From Saccostrea cucullata (lineage: Eukaryota): a stretch of 64,000 nt of DNA. Of the stretch, positions 35,101 to 38,100 are shown in pieces. Below the pieces are notes generated by a model. The model was not told the origin of the DNA. It saw only the letters and a program-made list of their open reading frames with translations, and searched no databases. Within the stretch, counting starts at the first letter, position 1. Each line of letters opens with the position of its first letter. The translations under genes were made by a program, and so were the position numbers. The DNA is taken from assembly GCF_032062105.1 (NCBI RefSeq), contig NW_026938747.1, forward strand, positions 186,001 through 250,000. The letters are read 5' to 3'.

Positions 35101-38100
35101 CTAATTGACTTTCAGGAAAACAGATATTTTTAATGCCTTGTCGAGAACTTTTATGGAACATGTAGTGATTTGTCATGTCTTTCCTTCCGTCACACTTTCC
35201 ACTTACTGGTAAATGTTTGTTATGTTAAATACTCTGTTAACTTGATTGCTACCTATCTGTAACGTTAAAAGGGGGGCTACCTGGTTGATAATGTAGGGGG
35301 CAACCAGGTAATGTAGGGGGCATAAAAGACTGATTTTCTCCCAGGGAAAATCCTACTATAGGGTAGAATTGGAGGAATCCATTCCTACAGTACTTTTCAT
35401 TAACACTGGTACTTGAGTTTTGAAGTAATAACATGGCTACTGCTCATGCTTTAAGGTATATTGTATCTCAGTTGAGGTCAACATAATTAAACTACTGTAA
35501 ACCAACTTTTAATCGCATGCGAGAAATTTTCGCTACTGCGAATATTCTCGCCGCGAACCGGTTGTAAAAGTGTATATGTCTATTAACAACAGATACAAAA
35601 AGGCTTGATCGCAAAAATTAATCGTCGCCAACTAGCTTCTCCCTGGTAAATGGCGAAATAATGTCCTCGCGAATAAAAGTTGGTTTACAGTATATTTTCA
35701 TATTTTAAATAAAAATCACCTGGAAATGTGGATTGTCCTGATATGTAAGTTGTATCGACATTCTGTATGTGGATTTTCCTGATATCTAAGTTGTACCGAC
35801 ATTCTGTAGGTGGATTTTCCTGATATGTAAGTTGTACTGACATTCTGTAGGTGGATTGTCCTGACTTGTAAGTTGTACTGACATTCTGTAGGTGGATTGT
35901 CCTGATATGTAAGTTGTACTGACATTCTTTAGGTGGATTGTCCTGATATGTAAGTTGTACCGACATTCTGTAGGTGGATTGTCCTGACATGTAAGTTGTA
36001 CTGACATTCTGTAGGTGGATTGTCCTGACATGTAAGTTGTACCGACATTCTGTAGGTGGATTGTCCTGACATGTAAGTTGTACCGACATTCTGTAGGTGG
36101 ATTGTCCTGACATGTAAGTTGTACTGACATTCTGTAGGTGGATTGTCCTGATATGTAAGTTGTACTGACATTCTGTAGGTGGATTGTCCTGATATGTAAG
36201 TTGTACTGACATTCTGTAGGTGGATTGTCCTGACTTGTAAGTTGTACTGACATTCTGTAGGTGGATTGTCCTGATATGTAAGTTGTATCGACATTTTATA
36301 GGTGGATTGTCCTGATATGTATAGAGGGAAACATAAAGATGATGCCAATCCAAGCTTGAAGTATGCACAGCAAGTTCACACAGCCATCAAAAAAGCCAAA
36401 GAGAAGGGCAGAAATGTAAGTTTATGATATGGAATGTGTTTTTATATTTGTACATGTAGTATGTAATGGCATATGCAGCTAATTGCTTTAAATTCTGTCT
36501 GTTGATAATGTAAAAAAAAATTCCAAGAAGCAGTAAATTATATATTTCTTAAAATCTTATTAGAGACAAATTTAAAATTTGATTCATATTTCAGCCAATG
36601 TAAATGTTCTTAATCACAGTGCCTACTTTTGTCATATATGTAACAAAAAATGTTGCAAGCAGCAAAATATATGTTAGAAGTTGTGTTGTGTATATTTTGT
36701 ATACAGTTACAGAAACAAGATTTCATAAGTACATGTAATAATTATTATAACTGAAAATAATCTTCAAGTGCATCATATTACAGTGGACCTTCAGATATCC
36801 GGACACCAGATATCCGGATGCTTCAGTATCCGGACGATTTTTCATTAGAACGGAAATTTTAAACATTATTTTGTCTTATTTAACTGATAATTCAGATATC
36901 CGGATGCTTCACATATCCGGACAAATTGACTAGGAACCAAAGCGTCCGGATAAATGAGGCTCCACTGTACTCAAGTCAACATCTAGAAAAAAAAAATACA
37001 TGTTCTTTAGCATAAAGTCTGCTTCTGAGAATAAAATTTTGGTTCAAATTGCTACAACTTACCTTTTTCCGTATCATACTCTGTATGAACCCGAGTGGCA
37101 AAAGTCTCAGGATTGTTATTATTGTCTCAGGCTGATCATGATATTCAGGGAGATATGTAATAATGTATGCATTACCATTAACCAACTCTTATTTGAGTGA
37201 GAGAAATATCTGCAAGTAAGACTTCTGATACCGCATCAAGCATATTCCTTTTGGAATGCTACCATTGGACAAAGGCAAGATCAGATAGATTTTTGTATGA
37301 ATCTGTTGGGGATTGGTTACACTTCTGGATGGGTGCCTGTTAGGGGCACCTATAATCCCAGCCAATAGACTTTATTGTGTAGTGTACATGATGCAGTAAC
37401 TGTGATGTGTTTTCAGGTAGCAGCCTTTATGTCTGAGCCTTTGATGACAAGTGGAGGGGTGATTATGTATCCAAACAAATACTTGAAATTGGTTTACAGG
37501 TATGCAGTTTAGGGTGTAGCTAATGCATGTACCCATGTGTAGCAAGTCCTAGTAAGCACTTCTTATCCATTCCTATGATTTCTAGACCAGTCAAAATGTT
37601 ATTCCCACAATTTAAAACAAAAAACATTCATTGCATTTAAATTTCAAAGTTAAAAGTTTTGGAATGCCTCCTGAAATAGCATTTCTGTTTGATGTGGATT
37701 TGAAATCTTTGGAATGGATAAATAAGTTGAGGTCACAGGGGCAGAGGTGGATATGGAGCAGTGAAGGTAACGCGGTCCTAACTGTTCTGGTTATGATTAC
37801 AGATTGCAGGCTTTCTCAGTGAACCGTTGATGAGTATATGTGGGGTGATAAACCCACCGAGGAACTACTTAAAGTTGGTGTACAGGTCAGTCTGTAGATT
37901 GTGATGTACCCTAACTACTTATAGTTGTACACATCTCTTCACAAATCAATTGGCTTCCCTCAAAGTCTTTACAAAAAAACACTCATTTCATGGAATTAAG
38001 TGCACTGTAGGACATGTAAAAAACATTGAATTGCAGTTTTTATGATGTTTTATAGCTGAAGCGGTTACCTACATGTGTATACATGTAGTGACATATGTAT

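Follow-up and report, generated by a model that had tools for sequence, protein, structure and literature searches.

A 64,000-nucleotide stretch of the genome of the oyster Saccostrea cucullata (contig NW_026938747.1, positions 186,001 to 250,000 of the forward strand; the window) carries on its plus strand, at about 23197-44224, a gene of the class III aminotransferase fold in which exon 7 is present in two copies. We conclude that these copies, 7A and 7B, are most probably either/or spliced tandem duplicates in this pyridoxal phosphate (PLP)-dependent class III aminotransferase-fold gene, with one copy used per messenger RNA (mRNA). Each mRNA would carry either 7A or 7B, giving two 486-residue enzymes that would differ only in residues 207-233. 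Within this segment, residue 218 is by alignment the counterpart of the specificity glutamate of the gamma-aminobutyric acid (GABA) and ornithine aminotransferases.

The exons of the window gene translate with 100% identity (tblastn) to RefSeq XP_062589545.1 of Saccostrea cucullata (P0161), "5-phosphohydroxy-L-lysine phospho-lyase-like isoform X2", a product name that was assigned by automatic NCBI naming. The PF00202 profile matched the window exon by exon with up to 55.6 bits against a cut-off of 30.5 and is also precomputed for P0161. By sequence, the window gene is a PLP-dependent member of the ETNPPL/PHYKPL family with the class III aminotransferase fold, and comparison with vertebrate ETNPPL or PHYKPL gives family membership, not one-to-one orthology. 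The gene falls in a lophotrochozoan group with a divergent loop in which the Gln of the canonical motif is lost. A second protein, P0270 (486 residues), was called on public-run contigs of at most 1824 nucleotides (nt) and therefore comes from spliced RNA. The features of the exon pair and its neighbours, in window positions, are the following.

Exon 6: 36302-36415, plus strand, 114 nt, ends in phase 0, constitutive upstream partner; placed by tblastn with P0161 and by the RNA joint 36415->37417.
Exon 7A: 37417-37499, plus strand, 83 nt, loop EPLMTSGG; the major form in the runs examined, present in the transcript-derived P0270.
Intron between 7A and 7B: 37500-37802, plus strand, 303 nt.
Conserved intron flank upstream of 7B: 37785-37802, plus strand, pyrimidine tract and acceptor; from blastn against Crassostrea virginica.
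Exon 7B: 37803-37885, plus strand, 83 nt, loop EPLMSICG; the alternative form, equal to residues 207-233 of XP_062589545.1 at 100%.
Conserved intron flank downstream of 7B: 37886-37901, plus strand, donor region.
Exon 8: 42536-42630, plus strand, 95 nt; carries the ADEIQ motif with Asp246 and Gln249.

Exons 7A and 7B were confirmed as tandem duplicates of one exon, each with its own splice sites and with equal length and phase. The acceptor and donor were ttttcag and gtatgc for 7A and attacag and gtcagt for 7B. Both exons enter in phase 0 and exit two bases into a codon, which is completed by the first base of exon 8 (42536). The two copies were identical at 55 of 83 nt and 17 of 27 amino acids, and their nucleotide differences at codon positions 1, 2 and 3 numbered 5, 7 and 16. 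The pairwise ratio of non-synonymous to synonymous substitution rates (dN/dS) was 0.19 (Fisher p 0.008 versus neutrality). Outside the exon edges the likeness was lost within about 20 nt, except for a common TAACTGT motif resembling a branch point, and there was no third copy of exon 7 within the window gene. The preliminary description of this DNA, made from the letters alone, had proposed a mutually exclusive pair of 83-nt exons with equal phases, canonical splice sites and 17 of 27 identical residues; its coordinates and counts were reproduced, and the neighbouring junctions that it gave, 36415 and 42536, were correct.

Because 83 is not a multiple of three, inclusion of both exons or of neither shifts the reading frame, as had also been pointed out. 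With both exons included, 7B is read out of frame and a stop follows after 8 codons; with neither, a stop is reached in exon 8 after 11 codons. The last junction is far downstream of either stop, and such mRNAs would therefore presumably be lost to nonsense-mediated decay. From this we infer that exclusivity is enforced at least by the reading frame.

Splicing was assessed in two raw-read oligo-dT RNA sequencing runs and two contig sets with the same species label, mapped to 36322-38050. The 6-to-7A joint (36415->37417) was detected in all four, by 5 and 2 reads in the raw-read runs and by a single contig in each of the contig sets. The 7A-to-8 joint was seen as a loose end behind 37499 in the two contig sets (X1, X3), equal to the first 30 nt of exon 8. 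A joint that would combine both exons (37499->37803) was not found in the four runs, at low depth. Reading of the mapped reads showed that the variants in exons 6 and 7A were all synonymous. At the protein level P0161 contains 7B without 7A and P0270 contains 7A without 7B. The two proteins were identical at 475 of 486 residues; of the eleven differences, all but the one at residue 405 fall within residues 207-233. One A-only and one B-only protein, together with the intact splice sites of both exons in relatives, are consistent with the mutually exclusive use proposed earlier.

The mapping start of 36322 was chosen to skip a minisatellite that ends at 36321. This repeat has a 41-bp unit, spans 35728-36321 (14.5 copies, 95% match) and ends at the genuine exon 6; the unit contains copies of the exon 6 acceptor and of the opening 18 nt of that exon, along with a GTAAGT-like site. 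All four runs gave a high RNA depth, about 100 to 14,000, over 36779-36970 within intron 6; loose ends flank this region on either side, and joints at 36793/36944 are on the opposite strand. This RNA looks like a dispersed high-copy repeat transcribed elsewhere, outside the mRNA of the window gene.

Comparison with Crassostrea virginica (L031) revealed the same two exons in the same order, at 12545-12627 and 13033-13115. When the two loci were aligned by blastn the exons matched and the introns did not. Identity was 78% for exon 6, 82.5% for 7A, 84.6% for 7B and 85.7% for exon 8, and the match over 7B (37785-37901) included 18 nt upstream and 16 nt downstream of the exon. The 12 nt before and the 8 nt after 7B were identical in the two species. 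Against its C. virginica ortholog, 7B had a dN/dS of 0.04 (Fisher p 3e-7), with changes at 11.5 of 17.5 synonymous and 3.5 of 63.5 non-synonymous sites; the corresponding dN/dS for 7A was 0.11. These sequence comparisons show that 7B has been maintained under strong purifying selection. Decay of one exon in relatives, which the preliminary description had raised, was not what we found for 7B, and the idea of a decaying pseudo-exon was rejected in view of its dN/dS and intact splice sites. C. gigas, C. virginica and Ostrea edulis have annotated isoforms of the B type (X2, X1 and X2, respectively), and the A type is annotated in C. gigas (X1) and C. virginica (X4).

To place the swap in the protein, both forms were modelled with AlphaFold2, the database proteins P0161 and P0270 standing for 7B and 7A. 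The swapped segment, residues 207-233 of 486, starts with a beta-strand, continues through the loop that follows the invariant Glu213 and ends early in a helix. Both models gave a strand at 207-212, a loop at 213-227 and a helix at 228-238, with a predicted local distance difference test score (pLDDT) of 87-97 over the block. The closest solved structure was human ETNPPL (6TOR; E 5e-146, Foldseek template modelling score (TM) 0.94, about 50% identity), followed by a bacterial phospholyase (5G4I). Across 40 homologues only Glu213 and Gly220 were invariant within exon 7. Lys276 (the PLP lysine) and Asp246 and Gln249, which hold the cofactor ring, were invariant or nearly so and lie outside the swapped exon.

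For alignment with Escherichia coli GabT, the GabT sequence was taken from the annotated K-12 record. Oyster Glu213 and residue 218 aligned gap-free with GabT Glu206 and Glu211, and Gly220, Asp246, Gln249 and Lys276 aligned with Gly213, Asp239, Gln242 and Lys268. Glu211 is the glutamate switch of GABA and ornithine aminotransferases, and the PDB contains a GabT active-site mutant at this residue, E211S (1SZK). The strand-loop-helix after Glu213 and the gap-free alignment of residue 218 bear out the earlier placement of the swap in an active-site loop. The two types are defined by residues 217-219: 7A has Thr-Ser-Gly there and 7B has Ser-Ile-Cys. Position 218 is thus occupied by Ser or Ile in the two oyster forms, and by Lys in the middle exon of Ruditapes, Cys in ETNPPL and Val in PHYKPL. 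The vertebrate paralogues ETNPPL and PHYKPL differ in this same loop (MQSCGG versus LPSVGG or LPSVAG).

The 7A and 7B enzymes may prefer different substrates or reactions, or may have different kinetics; we place this possibility somewhat short of an even chance. A difference in substrate specificity, as the preliminary description had suggested, is plausible. It is also quite conceivable, although again we would not go as far as even chances, that both forms are translated and act on the same substrate, and that the swap tunes kinetics, stability, dimer contacts or regulation. The two models have the same fold and the same confidence over the loop, the cofactor-binding residues are untouched by the swap, and 7A and 7B have the same helix part, YLKLVY, all of which agree with a shared substrate. 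Against it, the type-defining residues include the position of GabT Glu211 and are type-specific at five loci ordered by genomic position, and ETNPPL and PHYKPL, which NCBI names for different substrates, diverge in the same loop.

The either/or exon pair was followed into other molluscs by comparing exon-7 arrays at five genomic loci (the window, C. virginica, Ruditapes, Mya and Liolophura). Ruditapes (L030) carries three tandem 83-nt exons with AG/GT sites at 9566, 14213 and 16636, and Mya (L034) three at 18712, 21739 and 22544; the two arrays have the same order and match RefSeq isoforms X1-X3. Annotated variants numbered three each in Ruditapes, Mercenaria and Mya, two in Dreissena and two in Argopecten, where the transcript-derived protein P0297 carries the second. 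The isoforms of Pomacea and Haliotis have the same exon 7, with no difference there. In the chiton Liolophura sinensis (L035) there are two tandem 83-nt copies with AG/GT sites, at 43450-43532 and 44220-44302. The annotated protein P0214 contains the second copy only, and the first is likely an unannotated alternative exon. The unionid Sinanodonta woodiana (L033) uses an exon at 36553 and has an open-frame copy at 30127-30209, 6.4 kb upstream, without AG and GT, which by its sequence is to be regarded as a truly decayed exon. The Mytilus trossulus locus was uninformative, having a 100-N assembly gap (L032:8398-8497) at the expected place of exons 7 and 8.

When the exons are ordered by genomic position, residue 218 of the first exon is small at all five loci, with Gly or Ala next to it, and in the last exon of all five it is Leu or Ile, with Cys or Pro next. 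The middle exon of heterodonts has Lys or Gln at 218 and then Ala. In a tree of the 27 columns the first exon of heterodonts joined oyster 7A (support 82/85) and the middle exons formed a group of their own (87/85), and a tree in which all B-types were forced into one clade had a likelihood slightly above that of the free search. On balance these patterns incline us towards a 7A/7B split older than the divergence of oysters and heterodonts, and perhaps older than that of chitons and conchiferans. The former is likely but not proven, because the approximately unbiased (AU) test does not reject lineage-specific duplication: on the 27 columns neither an all-oyster clade (p 0.30) nor an all-heterodont clade (p 0.24) was rejected, a result that counts against a shared ancient pair.

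If the exon was instead duplicated independently in oysters, scallops, heterodonts and chitons, the likeness of the loops would be due to convergence. Besides the AU test, the identical C-terminal part of oyster 7A and 7B favours this explanation, and several phyla each evolved mutually exclusive exons of mrp-1 on their own, as the paper on coq-2 notes (PMC7434440). We consider it doubtful in view of the order shared by all five loci, which begin with the small-residue type and end with the aliphatic-Cys type, and of the grouping of oyster 7A with the heterodont first exon and the higher likelihood of the tree with monophyletic B-types. Under the most far-reaching version of the shared-origin reading, the variants (two in oysters and scallops, three in heterodonts) would yield enzymes that differ in substrate or reaction according to the residue at 218 (Ser, Lys/Gln, Leu/Ile) and its neighbours. 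At the level of splicing they would parallel the ETNPPL/PHYKPL gene pair of vertebrates, and they would have been retained from before the bivalves radiated, possibly from as early as the split between chitons and conchiferans. We offer this version tentatively and regard it as rather unlikely to hold as a whole. Candidate substrates under it would be phosphoethanolamine, 5-phosphohydroxylysine or another amino-phosphoester or phosphonate.

Several observations that speak against either/or use of 7A and 7B concern the expression of 7B. Exon 7B had zero RNA depth in all four runs, so of the junctions that the preliminary description had listed, 36415->37417 and 7A-to-8 were recovered and those of 7B were not. 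Depth over 7A was only about 3-7 reads, at which up to roughly a third of transcripts could be missed. A-only transcripts are represented by reads, contigs and P0270, and B-only transcripts by the RefSeq model P0161 alone. The oyster proteins listed as transcript-derived were all of the A type. Searches of the protein collection yielded no short spliced fragments of the B type; the fragment search returned genomic exon-8 open reading frames only and one region-limited search for the B type covered cluster representatives only. For the expression of 7B the evidence consists of RefSeq models and selection, and the reads show 7A only. RefSeq alternative isoforms require transcript support. Because no reads fell on 7B in the four runs, we grade it as a minority or tissue-restricted form. 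That 7B is instead a relic or non-productive exon, rarely or never translated, with the RefSeq X2 model an artefact, has the zero depth and the all-A transcript-derived proteins in its favour and is nonetheless very improbable, given a dN/dS of 0.04 while the surrounding introns fail to align, the intact length, frame, AG/GT sites and flanks in both oysters, the B-type isoforms modelled independently in four oyster species, and the loss of splice sites in Sinanodonta, where a copy really did decay.

With 7A and 7B taken as an either/or pair, the primary choice between them would probably depend on regulated competition between splice sites; of the two exons, 7B has the longer stretches of conserved intron at its edges. 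Steric exclusion was ruled out, as the 303-nt intron between the exons is too long. U2/U12 incompatibility was likewise rejected, the donors GTATGC and GTCAGT and the AG acceptors being all U2-type by eye. The 7A-7B intron of Saccostrea folded no better than shuffled sequence (z -0.52) and contained a single imperfect inverted repeat (37563-37589 / 37695-37721). Alignment with the C. virginica intron showed no islands beyond the 7B splice-site flanks, although elements shorter than about 15 nt could escape. The C. virginica intron itself (L031:12628-13032) folded far better than its shuffles (z -3.58); it contains an imperfect inverted repeat of 40 nt, which is unrelated in sequence to that of Saccostrea. 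A conserved docking-site/selector RNA pairing of the Dscam type is unsupported because of the poor fold in Saccostrea, the absence of intron alignment and the unrelated inverted repeats.

Paralogues were sought in the whole assembly (1.17 Gb), where PF00202 matched at six loci. A search of the genome with P0161 returned the window gene and a second family member on the minus strand of contig C4042 (L028:1497-8248). Its exons are 55-60% identical to vertebrate ETNPPL and insect homologues, its loop is the canonical AESMQSCGGQII, and its exons 6 and 7 are fused, with no duplicate exon seen. This canonical member excludes the idea that the genome lacks a paralogue. The suggestion that the animal uses exon swapping instead of gene duplication did not survive the finding of this second gene with its ESMQSCGGQ loop; judged by sequence, the animal has both a gene duplicate and an exon swap. 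A further locus, on C5581, looks AGXT2-like.

The isoforms are already in RefSeq, and the mechanism is of a known type, mutually exclusive exons that remodel the ligand site of an enzyme. Literature searches found no paper on this exon pair. What the present analysis adds is the depth of conservation, the two-to-three-way cluster and the position of the swap on a specificity residue. The locus amounts to a clean natural experiment with a specificity-determining loop of a PLP enzyme: one gene carries two or three versions of residues 217-219, each of which has kept to its type over very long times. Should the forms differ in substrate, exon swapping in one animal lineage and gene duplication in another would be answers to the same problem, and the swap would indicate which residues set ETNPPL activity apart from that of PHYKPL. 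The comparison is also of use for annotation, as it identified a chiton locus with a likely unannotated alternative exon and heterodont clams with a three-way cluster.

Among known systems we rank coq-2 as the best parallel. Its exons 6a and 6e are mutually exclusive and occur in helminths, annelids and molluscs, including oysters (PMC7434440). As in the oyster pair, the exons are homologous, of equal length and used either/or, the swap remodels the enzyme core, and the arrangement occurs in molluscs. In contrast, the choice of ubiquinone versus rhodoquinone precursor by coq-2 was shown by exon deletion, whereas the oyster pair is known from sequence, and the coq-2 enzyme family is unrelated to the oyster PLP fold-type I lyase. 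The vertebrate ETNPPL/PHYKPL genes (AGXT2L1/AGXT2L2) belong to the same family and vary in the same loop, but there the loop versions sit in two genes, while the oyster has them in two exons of one gene and has a separate canonical gene besides. Glu211 of GabT is matched gap-free by oyster residue 218, which lies between the invariant positions Glu206/213 and Gly213/220; however, neither the oyster forms (Ser, Ile) nor the phospho-lyases (Cys, Val) have Glu there, and a dual-substrate switch of the transaminase kind is therefore not expected. Pyruvate kinase PKM exons 9 and 10 are swapped tandem homologous exons. Tandem homologous exons are swapped likewise in the fatty-acid-gate pair of ACSL6 (PMC1543647). 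In both enzymes, as would be the case in the oyster, the exon swap alters a ligand-contacting segment of a metabolic enzyme, but these systems have other folds and belong to other lineages, being vertebrate-specific and experimentally characterised.

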